Assembly: GCA_000708835.1 (NCBI GenBank)
Contig: DF236958.1
Location: 124,001 to 188,000, forward strand
DNA from: Klebsormidium nitens
Taxonomy: Eukaryota; Plantae; Klebsormidiophyceae
DNA length: 64,000 nucleotides
Direction of reading: 5' to 3'
Positions 30,294-44,100 of this stretch are shown piece after piece. The position numbers and the translations under genes are program-made. A model generated the notes under the pieces. That model ran no database searches, was not told where the DNA came from, and saw nothing but the letters and a program-made list of their open reading frames with translations. How positions within the stretch are numbered: position 1 is the stretch's first letter; the number at the start of each line of letters is the position of its first letter.

Positions 30294-33200
30294 TCAAGTA
30301 CAGTGGGTCGGTGGACTGATCTCTTTGTGGTGAAGGGCAGCCGAATGCGCGAGGCACTGCGCGCTGGACTCAAACTCGCGGCCGCATGCCGCGCACTTGA
30401 ACCCACCTGGGCGCAAGGGAAGAGCAAGAGTTCAAAAAAGAAGCGCCGACGAGAAACTGTGGAGCGAGCTGTAGCAGAGCAAAAGAGAAAGCGGGGCAAG
30501 AAACAGAGTGGACAACAGGTCTGTTGATTCGTGCGCCTGAGAATATGCCAGCATTGCTTGTATTGTTTGTCCAGAAGGAAACGGATATCAAGAGGAGAGA
30601 TGAAGTTTGCTTGGATCCCAGAGGATTTGCCTTGACAATTCCCGGGCCATCAAGCACAGGCGTCTCTTGAGAACAACATGGCTAAAGAAACAAAGCTGTA
30701 AGGGAGTTAAAGGGAGGGCAGAAGAAGCGACAGAGACGGAGCATGTTCTCGTACAATACAATTGCCTAAGAAGCTCCATTTTAAAATCTGCTTGCCCTGC
30801 CCTTTTAGCCCGGGAATGAAGAAGGGAAGCCTCAGCAGTTTCGCCGCTTCGGGAGTGGGCGAAAAAGAGCCATCTTCTGTGCAGAATCGCGACACGCAAC
30901 CATGCTTAGGGCTTCGTTAGCAATGGTTAGACAAATGGGTTTACCTGGCGCGCCCTTCCTGAAGAAGGCATGTTGCATGGCCTCGTCCGCGCTAACCCGT
31001 TCTTCCGGGTTCCAATGCAGCAGCCGCCTCAACAGGCGTACCCCCCAGATGTCGATTTCGGCTTCCCCCCCAAGGGGATCCCTCGCCCGCAGCTGTTTGA
31101 GAAACGACTCCTCGCTGCACTGCCAGGCTAGTGCCCCGCCGCGACCTTGTTCTGAATCGTTGCCCCGGCTATTCGAACCGGGCTCCGTCGAACTGCGCAA
31201 GCTAAACCTGCCCCTGGCAATCTTCAAAACGAGATTTGGCAAGCTCCCGAGCCACCGAGCTATGTTTGATACCATATTTGATTCCCCCTGTGCACGTGGT
31301 TTCTCATCTTCCGCCGTCCGTCCAGTTTCCGTGGAAGGCGGAAAAAGGGCCGCCATCGGTGCGGGGGGGTAGATGCACAGCTCCAGAAAGGCCCTCAGAA
31401 CGTACGCCAGCTCCTTACACGTGGCGTCGCGGCAGCCTGCCAGGTGGCGCTCCAAGAGCGCGCGTGTGCGTGCAGACACTTGGAAGACGTGGGGGTTGCC
31501 GAGCAGAAGTTCGAGAAAAAGAACGCCCGCGCTCCACATGTCGTACCTGCCGGTTGGGAAAATGTGGCTAGAATCGAGGTCCAGGTCGGTTGAGGAATAC
31601 TTCTGCCCTCACCATGAAGAAGGCTGAGATTTTTGCTTGGGTTGAACGCTTTCGGACGAAGCACAGGGTTGGGCCCTTTCCCCTCGCACCCAAGATGTTG
31701 CACGGTCAGTCTGGAGTTCAATAGGTGCGATTTAGCTACAAAACGAAGCAATATTACTGAACTGCCTGCCTTCTTTGAAGTATCGAACTCTGTGTCGAAA
31801 ACAACATCTTGGGTTCAAGAGGGGTTTGTCTCTTCGGCCAGCCTAACCACCAGACGGAGTCCCTGCCGGGCCAGGCCATGACTGGGTGGATGAGTTAGGA
31901 CGCTTTATTACAAATCAGCTCGTTGCATACACCACTTGCACAAAATAAGCAGAGCATCGAACAATATACATGTCGCAGTAGTGTTCGCCCGTCTGCTTGA
32001 CGGACCTCGTACCGAAACCAGTTCCTGGATATTTCCATACCCTAAATCGATCTCCGAATGGTCAAAAGACTCACTTGGCGGCCTTGTCCGGTCGCCGTGG
32101 CAGCCAGGGCTCCTGAGCGAACAGCGCCTCGGGGGGGGAGTACTCCGGGGTCTCCTGTAACCTGCGCAGCGACGCGGCGCGTTGCTATTCGGAACTATTT
32201 CCAACGACTCTCGGGCTTTCGTATCACAGACGTGCCTCCGTCTCGGTGTCCGTTTTTGCATTCCTGTGGCGGACTTGGTTGAGCACATGTCCATCGAAGC
32301 AGCGAATCGAGGACTGCACGTTCAACTCGGTACTGTCGATGTCTGATTCTCCAGCTTGAAATCTGACCTCATCCACCTATTATGCCAGTATGACATTTTC
32401 GAAGCCTCGAACTTTTCAGGCTTAGGCCTTGGGCTTAGGCCCTTGGTATAGACGAGGCATAATTTAAGGTTGTATGATTATTTGAAAGGTCCCTGCGTGC
32501 CTGTGAGATGGTGCGCCTCCGGCGCCATGCACTGTCAAGCCAAATGAGGTTAAGCTGAAGCGGCACGGTCAACTTTCTCAAACCCAGAATTCCAGGGTTG
32601 GACTCAATGAGGAGGGTCAGAAGTCCACGCACCTCGAAGGGCCGTGCACCCCAGGGCGGTGGTGAGCCGAGGGGCTCCATGCACAATAAAGCCACTTTTA
32701 GTTACGGTAACCCGACACGGCCAACAATGTTTAATTCAGGGGTTCCAGGGTTGAACACGTGAGTGGTAGGGTAAAAGTCCACGCACCTGGAAGGGCCGTG
32801 CGCACCGTAGAGGTGGTGAGCGGCGGGGCTCCACGCGCTGCCGAAATCGATGAGGCGCAGGCTCAGATTGGACGCCTGTTGCCAGGCGGACGGGTCCGAT
32901 GCGCTGTGTGCGGGGCGGGTTACCAACAGAAGGTTATCTGCAAAAGGGTCAAATGATGGGTAAACCGATGCACACGTTGTCCTTGGGAAATACAAACAAG
33001 GAATAGGGTGACAAGTTGTGGTTAGCCGGCGGTTTTCACGGCTCTGGGATTGGAGCCTGCTGCCAATCGGACGGAGCCGAAGTGGGGTCCGCGGGCCAGG
33101 TCATCAGAAAAAGGCGAATTCAAACAAAGAGAGTAAAACTCGACATGACTCACGCCAAGCGAGACACTACAAAACTAACACGGAAGCACGGCAGAGACGA

Positions 33201-36200
33201 GAAGACCTGAGCAGAACAGACAGGCACCCAACAGAAATTCTTTTCTGGGCGCGTTCTCACCCGGCTTGACGTCCCTGTGCGTGACGTCATGCTGATGGCA
33301 GGTGCGCAGCGCGGCCAGGAGCTGCCACATGATGCTCTTCATCTCCTGCCGCCCGCGGACGTCCGTACGCAGCCACCGCCACCATGCGGACGGTGTAACC
33401 ACGCCCAGGCCGGGACGGTCGCCGGACGGGGCCGGGCTGCCCAGAAAAACGCTGACGTGAGGTTTGGGACGCTGACGTATGAGTTCGGACTCGCATTTCA
33501 TAGTCAGCATGTCAACGCGGATCACCAAAAGGTGCAGAAGCACAAGACGCGGACGGTGTAACCACGCCCAGGCCAGGACGGTCGCCGGACGTTGCCAGGC
33601 TACCAAGATGAAACACTGAACTGAATAAATCTCAAGAAAGATAATAACAAGCCAAGATAATGATAAGCTCCGACTAACACTGGAAACCCTAACCCAAAAA
33701 GATACCTGCTCCGCACCCATACCCACCCTACACACCAAACTAGCCGTACCCGTCCCAATGCGATTACCTTATTATTATCTCGGCTTATCATTATTTTTCT
33801 TGAGTTCCATGCCGGGCTGCCCAGAGAAACTCCGACATGAGGTTTCGCACGCTAATTTTCGGACTCTGATTCCAATGTCAGCATGGTAACGCGGATCACA
33901 CAGAAGGTGCAAAAGCACAAGATGCCTCCCGCGCTTGTAGAAACCTCTGACGCGTTTCTGGATTAACGGAGTCCTATTCGACTTGGTGATCTCCAACCTT
34001 GATATCGGATGAGCGTCAAGCTGACGGTCGCTGGGTAGGGTTCTAACACTGAACTGAAGTTAACCCCCGGGCCCTCAATATGACACCGGGCAAGAAGAAC
34101 TTGCAAGTTTGGATTGACAACATTGGAAGCGGTACTTCATTGTGAGAAGTTCGAAAATGAATTCTGCCGTTTGCAAAATGCACACCTGTCGTACATCCAG
34201 TCCCGGAGGCTTTTCCCCTCGTCGCGGAAGACCAGCCACAGCTCTCGGCCCGAGTGCATCTCAAAGGAATCTATGTACCTGGAAAAGAGAGGACGGCAAG
34301 ATTCAGGGGTATTTGCGTGGGTCCGCAGTGCTGACAGCCAGCAAAGAACGCTCTCCTCACAGCAGAAGCTTTGGCGATCTTCGACTGGATCAGAAAAGGC
34401 CTTCGATACATGTGAATTTCTGTATTGAACTCTTCCACAAAATTTCATTTCGAATTGTTACTGAGATGCTATGAAACAAGTCTGGTCTTCGGCTTTTGAG
34501 AGTCGTCGGTCCATGCCCTTTCAACTTCCACGTCGTACTTTATAACTTGACTCTGTTGCATCTCTTTCTCTCTGTTTTGCTCTACTGAATAGGCCCCCAA
34601 CGGCATTCACCAAGAGGTTCTTAAGGGCTTCTCAAAGACTTCTAGACTCGCTCATCAAGTCTGACTTGTTTGGAAAAAACGAGTACCCACTCGTTTTTGT
34701 TTTTCAATCTAACATCCCTCTTCTACCTGACCAGGTGCGAGTAATCGCCGCCCGAACCCTGGGCCTGCGTGCCGCCGCTTCCAGGGTTCGCGCTTGGCTC
34801 GGCGTGAGCTGTCGTCTGCTCGTGCTGCCACGTGGCGCTCGCGTTCATCAGCATCTCCCCAAAGAACTTTTCCCGCAGACCGCTGAGGCGTACCTGTCGT
34901 CAGATTATACTTCCGTTGTCCCAAGTCTGAACTTGATGACGAATCAAAGCCAGGCACGTTGTGCCCTTATTGACCAAAAAGATTACGAGAATAGACTCAG
35001 GTTTACGGTCAGAAACCCTTGTCCTCTTCATTATGGCGATCCGAATAACATGCTCTTCCTCCTTCGAACCAAGGACCAGTCAAACACGCTGCATTCTGAC
35101 CGTTGACTGAGGCATTGTCGAGTACCCACTGTACCAAAAGTTCGCAGGCCTGCGTTTCAACTCTTGACGCGCTGTGCAATATGCAATTTGAAGATCTCAA
35201 ACTAAGTATTGGATTGTAGTATTTGAATCCTGGGGGAGTAGAGCCCTGTACCTCCCCGCCCTTTTCCACTAGCAGCCGCTTGAGGATGAACAGCGTTCCC
35301 GCATCCCCATGGCAATTTTTTCCCTCCTCTCCATCGAAGTCCGATGAAGTGCTCCTCGCGTCCGTATACCGGCACCTGGCAGGAGAAGAGCCAATTGCCT
35401 TACGCAATACGGCCACGAGTTTTTCTGTTTTTCTTTTTTCTTTTTTTTTGGCACGTATTGTTTTACGGGTCTCAGACTGATATTTGATAATTTGGGAACG
35501 GTGCGGACATGTGACCGGTCAACTACGTCCGGTGTCTGTGCTCGAAAGCTACCTGCGGTTCCTATCTGCTTCGCTGACTCTGGCCACACGTAAACCGTCT
35601 GATCAGAGTCCGGATTATCAAGGGGGCTTTGTCTAAAGCGTAAGATTGAATCCTTCCAACGACACTTTTCTGCGGATGTCTCAGTCTCTGTATGCACCGA
35701 GAGGCTTCGTAAGGGTATTTTTCAAAGGCGATTGCAAAGGTTTCTTCCAGCCTCTAGCGAAGTAGCCAACAACAATCAACGTATGTAGTCACGAGTGCAC
35801 CAGATCACAACGTTTGCTGACCTGCGTCCGTGGTTCTCAGACTTGTCCGGCACGCGAACGGCGCGCCAAATCTCGCCGAAGGAGCCCTTTGCAAAGTTGT
35901 TTCGGAGCAGGTATCGATACCTGCGGATGACACCGACGACATAGTGTGGTACTAGATAGCGAATCGAGGCCTCGACCCTGTCAGTTGTGTTCATAAGATA
36001 CGACGTACTTAGTCAGTGAATCGTGCTCTCTTTGCGAAAAGAGAGGGCTGGACTTCCTGCAATCCCCTCCGAGAAACTAACTGCTGGCGTTTGAGCGAAC
36101 ATGAACGAGAGGCCAAGACCTTCCGGGTACGAGCTGTCGACTTTGTAGAGCCTCTCCTCTCAGGAACTAGATGTGATTCCTACTTGAGTTAAAGCCGACA

Positions 36201-39200
36201 ACCGCTATGATAAGGCGAGTCGAAAGACCTCGATCCGAAAAAAGGCTTCGAGATTTGCAAACAGACGCTCGACCAAGAACCCTCACAGAGGCTCCAAGTA
36301 ATTTTCTCAGCGACGCTCTACTCAAGAGCCCTCACCTGTGGTCGCCCTCCTCCCGCTGCACGCCCGCCGGCGTCCACTCCTCCCCGACCTCCTCCCCGGT
36401 GCTTTCCCCCGGGGGCCTCTTCCAGTCTGAGCGCGACTCCGTCCAGCCCCCCGGTTCAACGGGAACCGAGGCCACAATATCGAGAAAAGTGCCCAGTCCA
36501 TCCAACGCTTGGGAACCATCTGGAATTGAAGCGCGTATTCGGCTTGAGATCCCGAGTCCTGGATCGATCGTGGCGACCAAGTGCCGATGGTACAGCTCGA
36601 GGGTGGTCGCCCAAGGGGACGGCGACTGGGGAAGGGCGATGTCGCCGTCCGGAGAATTCAGGCCGAGCGGAATCGGGTGCAAATCTTCCGCGGTGTGAAC
36701 GGGCGCCTCGCCGGTGTGAACGGGCGCCTCGAGAGCAGAGCAGACGGGGAGGGACTCGGTGGGAACGGGCTCGGTGGGAACGGGCTCGGTGTGAACGTGC
36801 TCGGCGTGGACGCCCCCAGTGTAAACAGGGAAAGACGGGGAAGGGGCGAACGCCTTGGTGCGAAACGGCCCCTGCTCGGTGTGAACAGGCTCCTCTTGGG
36901 GGGGTCGTACGTTGCTTGGGACAGCAACAATGCTGGTGTCTGGGGCGGGGAGGGCCCGTAAGCCGGAGACCAGTTCGACCAGCTGATAGCACCAGTCGCT
37001 GCCCTCCCCATATACGACCTGCCCGCTTATGTAAACCTTGAAACCCCCGGCCTCGACGAGGGACGAATCGTCGACCTGGGCTATCGCCCGTCCAGCCGTC
37101 TCTTCTGTTACCGCTTCCTCGTCCAGGCGTTTCGTCGGAACGGGGTTCGGCTCATTGCTGACGACGTCGTCCGGCTTGCCGTCGTCATTGCCCCGCTTGC
37201 TGACGTCAGCACCCGGCTCGCTGACATCATTGCCCCGCTTGCCGGTGGCGCCATCAGCGGACGCGCCCAGATCGGCAAGTTGCTCCCGGCTCTCGTTCTT
37301 GGTCCCCGCTTTGTCTTTGGCGGCATCGCTTATCGCGTGCAAATCCACTACGACCACGGCAATGTTGTCCATGCTTCCCTTTTGGAAAGCTACGTCCCGC
37401 AGCTTCTCCGCAATTGCCCCGGGCAGAAGCGCCCTTCCGTCGACTTCTGGACGCTGGCCTACTGGGACGCCCGGTTCAGGAGCTGCACGAAAAAGCCAAC
37501 ACTATTTGTTAAGTCATGGTTCATGGTAGTTTTTAGGCGAGTCTTACCATCTCTAAGCGGCAGCTTTGTTGCTCATGAACGGCAATGATGCAAAAGCAAG
37601 AAAGAAAACATGTGGAGTACAACTCTGTATTCCGCACCTCTGGTCAAACCTAAACTGCCGCCCTTTATTGAAGGAGGATGAGCGATTTTTCCAGAAAAAG
37701 TACGTTGCTTTTGAAAGCTACCGCTGATGACTTTCAAACGGCAGCCTTCTTGACATAAGTCTTTCATCCTTTCAGGAATGACGGACGAGTCGAAGAGTCC
37801 CCAACCTCATTGCCCTGCCCGCCAGAAGCAGACTTTCTTGGACCTCACCTTTTAGGTTGGCTCTGGTTCCACTATGGTGCTTTTCCTGGTCGGGGGCTGC
37901 ATCCGCTTGTAGACTCGTCTCACTCTCCGTCCTCACCCACCCCCCCTTCTCCGAGTCCGACGGCCTCAGGGGTATGGCTGGCCGCCTAACTTCCCCCCCA
38001 GAATCGTCAGAACCGCCCTCGATGCTTGCTACCAGATCGCACACACACTGGCCCCCCGGAATGTCCTCGTACACCCCATCTGACGCCAGCACCAAGAACC
38101 TGACGTCCGAATCGCTGATGTCGATCCATTCAGACAGCTCCGGATCCGGTATCATTCCGTACGGTTTCAAGTCCAGGTCGCCAATCGCGCGGCTCAGCAT
38201 CGAGACGCCCATCAGGCGGGGGACGCCGTTGACAGCCAAAACGACCCCCCCGGATGCGCGCACCCGGTCGATCTCGTCTTGCCGGTCGAAGCGGTGGTTT
38301 GACGTCAGGTCTTGGGCACACAAGCCGCAATTCCGCTTTTTGCGGGTCCCGCGGCGGGTCGGGGCGGGGCAACGGGAAGGGCAGCCTGATGGAGGAGCGG
38401 TGGAGCAGAGAGTGGCACGGGAGTCTCCCACGTTTGCTACCTGGTTAGTGATGAAGAGGAGATTACAGGAAGGCTTGAAGATATCTTGGAGAGTGTTGAT
38501 CTCGAGGTTATGCTCGGAGCCCAGACGAAGGAGAGTCGATTTCGGACAAGCCAGGCTCGTGCACCTGAATCCGAAGCTGTTGCATTCTGGGAATCTGTTT
38601 ACTTGCTTTTTTGTCCTTTTCGAGCACGAGCTTTTTGCCCTATTCGAGCACCTCTTGATGACGGGAGGCTTCCTCTGAAAGAAGCGAAAGCGTAACAAAC
38701 TTGGCCGCGAAGGAAAAACAAAAACTGCCTGAACTCGCCCTTTCGAAGCGGCACGCTTCCTTGGTGCTCCCTTCATTGTTGCTCCATAGCGATTTTACAA
38801 AGTTGCATGAATCATACGCGCTTCGAAATGAGAACCAAGCACAGTCAAGTCACTCAAAAATCGTAAAGAGACTTTTGGATACACGCACCTTGATCATATG
38901 CTCGAGAGGACAGTTTTCTAAGCCAGGCTTCGAGTGACATTAACTTACCTGAAGCCACCTGTTCCCCACAAGGACTGCCACACACGCAGTGGTCCCAGCA
39001 TCAATCCCTTCCGACATTGCAAAAGTCTGAAACTCAGTGTCCAACTTTAGTAGCGCCCTCTCGACAGCCTTGCTCAGGCTCTCCAGTGTATGCGCCCCTC
39101 CTTTCGACAGGGTCCTTTCGGACAGGAGCTGCTCTACGGATAAGTCGTTTTCGAACAGGCTGCAGAGCTTCTTGTCTTGCGCAAGGTTAGCCACTAGCTC

Positions 39201-39590
39201 TGCTTCGAGAACCGGTCGGATGTGCCGGGCTGCAAACTCGCTGGCTTGAGCTCCCCCGTGACCGTCGAAGACTGCGAAAGCTCTTACGTCTAGTTTGCCA
39301 GACTCAGCTCCCCCAGCCTCAGCTAATCTTTGTCTTCCGGCTTCTTGATCAGAGTCTGACTCTGATAGAGGTGGACACACTTTAGCGAGCGGGATTGTAA
39401 TAACGTCTATGCACAGGGCCCTATCCTCCATTGCGTCCCGGAAGCCTTGCATCAAAGATGTTCCGCAGAAGAGCTCTTCCCCAGTTTCTGATCCTGCGGT
39501 GATGCAAATCAGGAGTGCAAGCCAAATGAAGAGCGTGCGCCAGAGAATAGCAAAAGGAAGCATGTCGCATCGTCCTCGGGAGGGCGCCAT
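30294..39590 (-). CDS. Signal-peptide PP2C phosphatase - Ser/Thr kinase fusion (plant PP2C51/At3g63340-like) with C-terminal C2H2 zinc finger (~1330 aa)
   Basis: Twelve phase-consistent exons: 39590-38949, 38440-37849, 37482-36336, 35920-35822, 35375-35252, 34893-34727, 34278-34186, 33436-33261, 32937-32787, 32161-32075, 31546-30945, 30406-30294 (3993 nt). PP2C motifs: RDAMED, FDGHGG, ANVGDSR, SRAIGD, LASDGV, GSMDNIAVVVVDL. Kinase motifs: AKGSFGEIW, ILKRL, HRDVKP-DN, IDFGS, YSPPE, YDMWSAG. Alternative ATG at 39563. Confidence 0.9.
32590..32685 (-). repeat. Intronic copy of the 3' end and donor site of kinase exon 9
   Basis: aagtccacgcacctcgaagggccgtgcaccccagggcggtggtgagccgaggggctcca (~32621-32679) matches aagtccacgcacctggaagggccgtgcgcaccgtagaggtggtgagcggcggggctcca (~32775-32833). 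The flanking ttccagggttg is also shared and the GTGCGT donor is retained. Confidence 0.85.
33386..33925 (-). repeat. Duplicated acceptor-region and exon-start segments upstream of kinase exon 8
   Basis: Exon start 33386-33436 is copied at ~33549-33600. The intron end 33437-33548 is copied at ~33811-33925, sharing gccgggctgcccaga, tgaggttt, gtcagcatg..aacgcggatcac and aaggtgca.aagcacaaga. Confidence 0.85.
36691..36814 (-). repeat. Coding tandem repeats in the PP2C-kinase linker (21-bp x2 and 15-bp x4; VHTEP-like units)
   Basis: cggtgtgaacgggcgcctcg x2 (36691-36731). ctcggtgggaacggg x2, then ctcggtgtgaacgtg and ctcggcgtggacgcc (36755-36814). Protein: VHAEHVHTEPVPTEPVPTE...APVHTGEAPVHT. Confidence 0.85.
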
Positions 39591-41130: not shown

Positions 41131-44100
41131 ATGGCGCTGTATCCGGAGAGTGGTTACTCTTCAGGCCTGAAGCTGCCGGCCGGGGTGCGCATTCGCGGCT
41201 CCATCAAGCCTGGCTATGAAACAGTTCTGACGCATGAGGCTGTGGCTTTTGTTGCGGACCTTGTTCGCACCTTCCGGCCAATTGTGCACTCCAACCTGGC
41301 TCTAAGGGCTTTGGACCAGGCCAAGTACGATGCAGGGGGCCACCCAGGGTTTGACTTCCGGACTAAGGCCATCAGAGAGGAGGATTGGACATGCGCTCCC
41401 ATGCCTGCGGCTATCCAGGACCGACGGGTGGAAATCACTGGGCCCGTGGACAGGAAGATGGTCATCAACGCGCTGAACTCTGGGGCTAAAGTCTTTATGG
41501 TGAGTTCAGTGTGTTTGAGAGGCATCTCCCAAGCAAGCTGCAATCCAGCATGAAGTTTTTGTCACGAACCACAAAAGGTTGGTGGTATTGCCTGACTCGA
41601 TTGAAAGCTTTCTGAAGATCATTAACACATCTTTGCATACTGTATTGGAAGACAAAAGAAAGCTGGTACTCAGGGCATGAGCTGCTTTTACAAATGCAAA
41701 ACAAGCTACTTTGCAAACCAGGCTGAAATTGCTGTTCGACGGCAGCTGGTGTTTCTGGCAGCTGGATTGTCTCATGCATAGGTGCATGCCTGTTCAGAGA
41801 AAGTAGTAACACAGACAATTATAATCAGCATCTGTGTAAACTCCCATCATCTGGGGCTGTTAGTCTGCACCAGGCAGCTGAAGTCACAGCATGTGCCAGT
41901 CTATGCAAGAACCTTATTGTGCTTCATGCTGGTGAATTATGGAACTGCTTCAACATAAAGGTTCATTGCTGTCCTCCCAAATACACATTGTTGCAAAGAG
42001 TTGTTTGAGTATTGTAGAGCTTACGTTGTCTTGTCACATTACCTTCAATCGTTATGAAAGCAATCTGGAGTCAGCACCGCTTGCACGAGTGGAATATCAG
42101 CAGAACCTTGTCACTCCTGTGAGTTCTTATGCCGGCAGCTTGTCTGCAGGCCGACTTTGAGGACTCTCTAGCACCGACCTGGAGCAACTTGGTGGAGGGC
42201 CACATCAACCTCAGGGACGCCGTGAATGGCAACATCCGCTATGAGGACCCGCGCACCAAGAAGGTTTACTCCGTCACAAACCCCAACCCCGCCAAAATCT
42301 TTGTGCGGCCCCGCGGATGGCACCTGCCGGAGGCGCATTTCGAGGTTGATGGACAGGCGATCCCCGGGTGCCTGATGGACTTTGGGCTGTACTTCTTCCA
42401 CAACCAAGCGGCCTTCCGGTCGAAGCATGGAGGCGCCGGGCCCTTGTGAGTGGACTGTTGCCCAAAGATGACTGTTGATTGCATCCTCACTGATTGGGAA
42501 TGCATATGCATACAAAATGATCTGCCATTGCAATGAGGGAGTTCAAAGTTGGATCTTGGCTGACGCATGAAAAGGAAAACAAAAGCCTCAGTGGTGGTTT
42601 GAAGGATTGGAGATTTCCAGCTCCCTAAGACCACAGTCAAAACTCATTCATGATTGAGATTGTTGCGATAAAGCTCCCACAAATCGAATTTACAGTCTAT
42701 TCTTGTTTGAGGGTGGTGTGAAGTGATTCGTAAATGCGAGTGAGCTGTAGCTGATACAACCTTTGAGAGCTGCAGGTTTTCACATTCATGAACTCGAACT
42801 GTGAGTTTCAACTCTGTCAATACAGGGCTCTCTGTCACCACTCAGCGGTTTTCTCTACGTGCAGCTTCTACCTCCCCAAGATGCAGCACAGCCGTGAGGC
42901 TGCTGTTTGGAACGCAGTGTTTGAGCGCGCTCAGGACGCCTTGGGAGTGCCACGTGGCAGCATCAAGGCCACCGTCTTGATTGAGACCCTGCCGGCCGTC
43001 TTCCAGATGCACGAGATCCTCTATGAGCTACGCCAACACTCTGCTGGTCAGTATGGATATTCAAAGCTGCTTGAGGTTCGACCCTTTGGTTCCTGCAAAT
43101 GACAAGAGACTTTTATCAGGGTCCACATATTCGCTCCTGAGAGTGTATATGGCTCAGGATCATCTGGGAAGCTTTCCGCTTCAGCATAGCCTTCAAGTTT
43201 GAGGTTCGACCCGCCACATATAACCAAGTCGCAGTCTCCTAGCGCCAGGATACAGCCTTTCAAGCTCGAAAACAGTACATTTCACCAATAAAGCACATCC
43301 TTTCGAAGCTCGAAATGCTGCTTTGAAAAGATCCATATCTAAGCAAGCTCCCTTACACTTGATTGTCTGTTTCAGGTCTCAACTGCGGCCGCTGGGACTA
43401 CATCTTCAGCTTCATCAAGACCTTCCGCAACCACCCCGAGCTGGTGATCCCTGACAGGACGCAGGTCGGCATGACGCAGCACTTCCTGAGCAGCTATGCG
43501 CAGCTCCTGATCCAGACGTGCCACCGGCGGGGCGTGCACGCAATGGGAGGCATGGCGGCCCAGGTGCGCACGCTTCCGTGATATCTGGCCAACGCAAGCT
43601 CTCGCTCCTGTATAACCAGCTCATTCCGTCAACTTCTTGATTCGAAGACTAGAAGGCTCTATCTTGAAAGAAAACTCTAGAAAGAACGCGATCGCGCTTA
43701 CTGGATTGATAAATCTGGTGACAGGTCTCTTGGACCTTTTACTTGCAGAACAGTGATGCACGGTTGGATTGCTTTCATTACACGGAGTTGGTTGCTTTTT
43801 CTACGTTCGACACATACCACTAAGTGATCTGGCCCAGCGTTCTTTTACGAACCAGTCAGAACTGCTTCTGGAAGACGCGGGGGTCAAGTGCCGTTGTACA
43901 GACATTGTGCTGCACCATTGCCGCGTTACTGCTTCGTTATATCACAACCTTTATGTAGTCACCTTCGCCGACAAAGCTGTGACGCATCGACTGGATTACA
44001 GACATCAGTTTGACAAATTTTCCGTTTGTAGTTCGGTCTCTTCCATCGCCAACTTTTCAGATGAAGTTCTTTAACTTCACACATCCTGGCCCTTACAACC

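Follow-up and report, generated by a model that had tools for sequence, protein, structure and literature searches.

A predicted single phosphatase–kinase fusion gene with a putative secretion leader in the alga Klebsormidium nitens

On which side of a membrane would a polypeptide act if it begins with a secretion-type leader and continues with two enzymes of opposing activity, a phosphatase and a protein kinase? A locus of the alga Klebsormidium nitens raises this question. It lies in a 64,000-nucleotide stretch of DNA (the window; contig DF236958.1 of assembly GCA_000708835.1, positions 124,001 to 188,000 of the forward strand), where an original prediction, made from the letters alone, had placed a leader, a PP2C phosphatase and a kinase on one polypeptide. 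Our results support a model in which the locus is, with high probability, a single predicted gene orthologous to the streptophyte PP2C–kinase fusions AtPP2C51/At3g63340+At3g63330, OsPP2C76 and MpPP2C_J. The K. nitens gene is a new, early-diverging member of this known, uncharacterized family. As an overall explanation, an orthologous fusion gene whose product is led into the secretory lumen by its leader would account best for the locus, and we regard that explanation as about evenly balanced between being right and wrong.

The exon model was derived from the sequence, and its junctions were then verified by coordinates (Table 1). On the minus strand, twelve exons between an ATG at 39590 and a TGA at 30296-30294 join into a single predicted reading frame of 1330 residues, with a summed coding length of 3993 nucleotides (nt; 1330 codons plus the TGA). 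The introns are GT–AG at every junction and the phases agree, so that a continuous in-phase frame would carry leader, phosphatase and kinase on one polypeptide, as originally predicted, and the bounds first proposed for the gene (30294-39590) match the derived ATG and TGA exactly. The predicted protein opens with a hydrophobic leader and continues with a PP2C domain, a linker rich in proline, a divergent kinase domain and, at its end, a C2H2-like tail of 36 residues. The region is about 52% G+C and holds numerous short minus-strand open frames with PP2C and kinase motifs; Rfam gave no match within the window. Searches of the window were run exon by exon or with database orthologues. Each of the 12 exons has a conserved counterpart in both of two related genomes of Klebsormidium type, with 68–100% amino-acid identity in a Logan contig of SRR23617307 (L002) and 44–93% in a 77-kb JGI metagenome contig (L001/L003). 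Intron 11, the sole intron compared, aligns only patchily between the window and L002.

Table 1. Predicted exons of the phosphatase–kinase gene, in window coordinates, with the evidence for each
Feature	Position	Strand	Evidence
Exon 1: ATG, leader, first part of PP2C	38949..39590	-	Pfam PF00481; conservation in L002 and L001
Exon 2: PP2C core (GDSRA, SRAIGD, SDG) and variable insert	37849..38440	-	Pfam PP2C; AHG3/ABI2 alignment
Exon 3: GSMDN, then ~330-residue proline-rich linker	36336..37482	-	ABI2 alignment
Exon 4: kinase glycine loop xKGSFGE	35822..35920	-	Alignments; conservation
Exon 5: beta-3 strand with ATP-binding Lys	35252..35375	-	Alignments
Exon 6: helix C region, family motif SGLREK-FGE	34727..34893	-	Alignments
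Exon 7: kinase beta-4/beta-5	34186..34278	-	Alignments
Exon 8: family motif PSxWWxWL, catalytic loop HRD	33261..33436	-	Pfam Pkinase on enclosing open reading frame
Exon 9: catalytic Asn, insert, DFG	32787..32937	-	Alignments
Exon 10: end of activation segment (PPE)	32075..32161	-	Alignments; split-codon Arg and Lys
Exon 11: C-lobe (DMWS, family motifs, insert, subdomain XI Arg)	30945..31546	-	Pfam Pkinase; tblastn
Exon 12: C2H2-like tail and stop codon	30294..30406	-	Conserved in L002 and L003

The phosphatase half is recognized directly by its Pfam profile. The scores of exon 1 (34.2 bits, E 2.7e-08) and of exon 2 (73.1 bits, E 3.7e-20) against PF00481 each exceed its curated cut-off of 20.3 bits. 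Exon 2 aligns to AHG3/ABI2, and the PP2C end of exon 3 aligns to ABI2; the identity of exon 2 is 78% in L002 and 66% in L001. The PP2C metal-binding residues had been predicted to be kept, and all four motifs that contain them (RxxMED at 39431-39423, DGH(GG) at 39266-39258, SDG at 38083-38075 and GSMDN at 37372-37364) do align residue for residue with those of solved PP2Cs. An invariant Cys pair that flanks the first of these motifs is also present in the aligned algal sequence.

The kinase domain is spread over eight exons (4–11). Single-exon matches to Pfam Pkinase (PF00069), with E 9.1e-07 for the open reading frame (ORF) of exon 8 and E 4.3e-05 for exon 11, score 29.0 and 23.5 bits and stay below the whole-protein cut-off of 31.7 bits because the domain is split among exons. 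PF00069 is carried by the orthologues in the family searches, and tblastn of land-plant fusions against exon 11 gives matches down to E 1.5e-31. Alignments with orthologues confirm that the catalytic positions first named are retained, with the Lys (in FILK) at 35281-35279, HRD at 33279-33271, Asn at 32935-32933 and DFG at 32848-32840. The domain also keeps the glycine loop, the helix-C Glu/acidic region, HRDVKPDN, PPE, DMWS (DxWS) and the subdomain XI Arg. In an AlphaFold model (pTM 0.68), the kinase region of the Sphagnum orthologue adopts a kinase fold that contains long disordered inserts and is closest to the CMGC kinases CLK1/3 and CDK9, at 13–19% identity; a look-alike search of the ESM Atlas returned generic kinases only. 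In databases, the Arabidopsis kinase half is named 'probable inactive protein kinase At3g63330'. Since the 1041-residue Arabidopsis product (P0150) keeps Lys, HRD, Asn, DFG and PPE, the label 'inactive' is unsupported, and it probably comes from an old truncated gene model.

The case for one gene rests on comparison. Four full-length land-plant fusion proteins, from Sphagnum (P0003), Marchantia (MpPP2C_J, P0076), Diphasiastrum (P0026) and Nymphaea (P0033), were compared with the locus by tblastn and aligned collinearly on one strand, and the ends of the matches coincide with the exon ends of the model. The 1041-residue Arabidopsis product and rice OsPP2C76 are likewise collinear with the locus. 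The two residues predicted from split codons, Arg at junction 9/10 and Lys at junction 10/11, are residues conserved in land plants. The alga shares with the Arabidopsis, rice (OsPP2C76) and Marchantia proteins the order of leader, PP2C, linker and divergent kinase, and with the land-plant fusions, at ~29–56% identity per exon, it has in common the kinase motifs SGLREK-FGE, PSxWWxWL, PHVFQ-S-RTRALL and W-C-(S/T)-EE as well as the invariant cysteines around the first PP2C motif. It differs from them in three respects: the pair of cysteines that forms a motif right after the leader of seed-plant members is missing, the proline-rich linker is longer, and there is an additional C2H2-like tail, which the land-plant orthologues inspected do not have. 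The collinear alignment and the family motifs thus support the proposed homology to the At3g63340-type plant fusion. An exhaustive search with exon 1 yielded only Klebsormidium-type fragments (P0001, P0002), the best full-length match being the Sphagnum fusion, and the matches to exon 3 in a word search were all ORF calls on related contigs. The matches listed in two family searches did not include the annotated protein of the alga itself.

The family comprises at least 319 proteins. Among the 120 matches listed, every protein with a named source is from an embryophyte and nearly all carry both PF00481 and PF00069; nearly all of these 120 best members are fusions of ~1000–1300 residues. Several members lie on Logan contigs of 3–5 kb with more than 1000 uninterrupted codons, which must therefore be land-plant transcripts. 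The fused form has been seen before: a full-length Arabidopsis cDNA described in 2009 spans At3g63340 and At3g63330 as a single ORF (PMC2695776), and the kinase domain of rice Os11g37540 (OsPP2C76, 1116 residues) was noted in 2008 (PMC2612031). The expectation that the fusion is essentially uncharacterized proved correct, in that the searchable literature yielded neither a paper dealing with what the PP2C–kinase fusion family does, its substrates or its location, nor a study of the activity or mutant phenotype of the fusion. Most of the literature matches to 'PP2C51' appear to concern other genes of the same name.

Where the encoded enzymes would act depends on the leader. It spans residues 1–34 (nt 39590-39489), with a hydrophobic core at residues 19–32 (nt 39536-39495) whose Kyte–Doolittle value is 3.11 over 10 residues and 2.16 over 19. 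The h-core is ~12–14 residues long, Ala and Ser occupy positions -3/-1, the N-flank has a net charge of +2, and the C-flank, an acidic stretch, has a net charge of -3. By these heuristics of hydropathy, charge and -3/-1 residues, on which the call is based, the N-terminus looks like a signal peptide, as originally predicted, and we consider targeting to the endoplasmic reticulum (ER) by the leader probable. The PP2C fold begins ~8 residues past the leader. No second membrane segment was found in any exon, the 19-residue hydropathy maximum elsewhere being 1.37 against a threshold of 1.6, and a helix straddling an exon junction is excluded by exon ends that are too polar; the earlier statement that no transmembrane helix follows is therefore upheld. 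All three Klebsormidium-type genomes share the start codon (39590 in the window) and the four residues that begin the protein.

A similar leader is found throughout the family. Among orthologues with a complete N-terminus, a hydrophobic core lies within the first 40 residues in 124/135 (~92%), and most of the remaining 11/135 have the same core in a shifted position, their gene models being extended at the N-terminus. The uncharged stretch of the leaders has a median length of 18 residues, cleavage region included. Residues at -3/-1 are small, with VAG, CGG, SSG or SNG typically preceding a conserved Glu-Ser, and a two-cysteine motif directly follows the leader in 117/135 orthologues (seed plants). 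A KDEL/HDEL ending occurs in 0/135, and there is no recurrent second hydrophobic segment among them. Because ~92% of orthologues have a predicted leader with neither a KDEL-type end nor a consistent second segment, the "topology paradox" noted for this locus is, as far as sequence can tell, a property of the whole fusion family and not only of this alga. Several cysteines of the family are invariant or nearly so and are arranged in nearby pairs; the alga has the invariant pairs at residues 42 and 60 and in the kinase C-lobe. Three conserved N-glycosylation sequons, each present in at least 29/33 orthologues, were not counted as evidence, since one adjoins HRD and only one of the three occurs in the alga.

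We propose that the leader would act as an ER signal, probably cleaved, and that a soluble phosphatase–kinase protein would thereby enter the secretory lumen and might continue to the apoplast or vacuole. There, the kinase would write and the Mn/Mg-dependent PP2C would erase phosphate on proteins of the secretory pathway or on each other, so that phosphatase and kinase together might form a self-contained switch. A positive N-flank combined with an acidic C-flank predicts an N-in orientation with the C-terminal part in the lumen, and we infer that a signal that is cleaved, leaving the mature protein in the lumen, would account for the family-wide features better than a signal anchor would. A lumenal location of both catalytic domains is thus the leading but unproven reading, with roughly equal prospects of proving true or false. 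Several considerations weigh against it, however. The leaders of the two Klebsormidium-type relatives are weaker, with Arg, Glu or Asp within the hydrophobic stretch. The cytosol or the nucleus is the typical site of PP2Cs, kinases of eukaryotic type and C2H2 fingers, and no kinase is known to act in the plant secretory lumen. In addition, the searchable literature, N-glycoproteomes and Golgi proteomes included, yielded no proteomic or imaging data on the location of the fusion family.

Some of these considerations give weight to the main alternative, in which the leader is an uncleaved signal anchor that holds the protein to the plasma membrane or an endomembrane, with the phosphatase, the kinase and the zinc finger all on the cytosolic side. 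The protein would then act as a phospho-switch bound to a membrane, an idea already put forward for the signal anchor of the plant phosphatase KAPP. Beyond the cytosolic or nuclear type of the catalytic domains and the poor quality of the related leaders as signal peptides, this alternative can draw on the C2H2 finger, which suits the reducing cytosol better than the oxidizing ER lumen, and on the algal hydrophobic stretch at residues 10–32, which at ~21–23 residues is long enough to span a bilayer. Yet the charge flanks predict a lumenal C-terminal part, most orthologue cores are short by the median given above and have small -3/-1 residues, and the two-cysteine motif stands right after the leader in seed plants. 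On balance, we consider a signal anchor unlikely, although it is the most serious competitor to lumenal entry.

A far less probable alternative is that the hydrophobic segment is not N-terminal or does not serve in targeting, either because an upstream exon is spliced at an AG before the ATG or because a cytosolic form starts at a later Met. An AG does lie directly before the ATG in 3/3 genomes, and in the three Klebsormidium-type genomes Met-47 falls at the very start of the PP2C fold. However, in-frame stops occur 0–5 codons upstream of the ATG in 3/3 genomes and conservation does not extend into the upstream sequence; the land-plant orthologues, in which Met-47 is not kept, begin with the same kind of leader. 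Similarly improbable is that phosphatase and kinase are made from separate messages, or mostly as such isoforms, with the fused protein minor or absent in the alga: the older Arabidopsis annotation did contain two genes, At3g63340 and At3g63330, with the fused cDNA first termed chimeric (PMC2695776), and databases hold kinase-only isoforms of ~610–720 residues (P0095, P0115, P0122, P0137), but the exon 3/4 junction is in phase with good splice sites, the motif at the end of exon 3, directly before the kinase, and the kinase start are both kept in four Klebsormidium-type sequences, nearly all of the 120 best family members are fused, transcript-sized contigs included, and no Met-initiated kinase-only frame is evident at exon 4.

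As a tentative and rather doubtful extension of the lumenal reading, we put forward that the kinase–phosphatase pair on one chain is lumenal or secreted throughout the family, from Klebsormidium up to the flowering plants. Were this true, the plant lineage would have its own reversible phosphorylation in the secretory pathway or cell wall space, unrelated to the Fam20C type. Delivery of both enzymes to the lumen by the leader would provide a built-in writer and eraser of phosphate for secreted or cell-wall proteins, and we know of no kinase or phosphatase that fills this role in plants. If the leader is instead an anchor, the protein would be a membrane-tethered, self-contained phospho-switch. 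The predicted fusion, leader included, would already have been present in filamentous streptophyte algae, and its retention in all the land-plant lineages sampled implies that its function is important.

Comparison with other systems offers partial parallels. Fam20C, a kinase of the animal secretory pathway, has a signal peptide and acts in the lumen or outside the cell, and VLK and the secreted kinases and PP2Cs of apicomplexans likewise have signal peptides and act in the lumen or extracellularly. These animal and apicomplexan enzymes are not homologous to the fusion beyond the general kinase fold, and none of them joins a kinase to a phosphatase; unlike the Fam20C type, the algal kinase is of the canonical eukaryotic protein kinase type. 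VTC3 (At2g40860), the other kinase/PP2C fusion of plants, resembles the present one in having both domains on one polypeptide, but it belongs to a different family, in which the kinase comes first and no secretion-type leader is known. KAPP (At5g19280) has an N-terminal signal anchor and is thought to face the cytosol. Like the fusion, KAPP is a plant PP2C with an extra signaling domain, in its case FHA instead of a kinase (PMC2612031). The biochemical function of VTC3 is still described as unknown (10.1101/2025.04.03.647133; PMC2612031).

For the putative zinc finger named in the original prediction, exon 12 is in phase with the GTAAAC donor of exon 11 and conserved in the related genomes. 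Its 36 residues follow the pattern C-x2-C-x12-H-x4-H, with Cys at 30395-30393 and 30386-30384 and His at 30347-30345 and 30332-30330. The length, stop position, acceptor and phase of exon 12 are all the same in L002 and L003, where the Cys, His and aromatic residues are retained; synonymous and non-synonymous codon changes number 5/6 relative to L002 and 9/14 relative to L003. When the exon-11 donor is read through, the resulting tails in the three genomes are unrelated, with lengths of 42, 14 and 15 residues. The match to Pfam C2H2 profiles (PF13894/PF00096 type) is weak, at 14–18 bits over the full 24-position profile in three genomes against a cut-off of 27. The tail is absent from the land-plant orthologues inspected, and the putative finger is thus a lineage-specific feature of the Klebsormidium lineage. 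Its position on one chain with a secretion leader sharpens the topology paradox without resolving it.

Three further observations concern the locus itself. The linker in exon 3 (~36930-36680, minus strand) contains short proline-rich repeats of the PVHTE type whose sequence shows no conservation in land plants. Introns 7, 8 and 9 (window 32487-33925) contain nearby duplicates of parts of exons 8 and 9, splice sites included. The exon-8 acceptor region has a 60-nt copy 163 nt upstream (90% identity, AG kept), the end of exon 9 with its donor has a 62-nt copy 154 nt downstream (84% identity, GT kept), and more exon-9-like fragments occur at a spacing of ~150 nt. Similar fragments surround exon 9 in the relatives (L002 10082-10470, L003 8670-9454). 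These exon-sized duplications came from a separate repeat search and were not picked up by Tandem Repeats Finder; the copies might be what remains of a tandem duplication, or else act as decoy or alternative exons. Finally, a malate synthase gene (41131-43078, plus strand) is arranged head-to-head with the phosphatase–kinase gene, ~1.5 kb from its ATG, which leaves little room for upstream coding exons. The head-to-head arrangement is kept in L001 and L002 and suggests that the two genes share a bidirectional promoter region.

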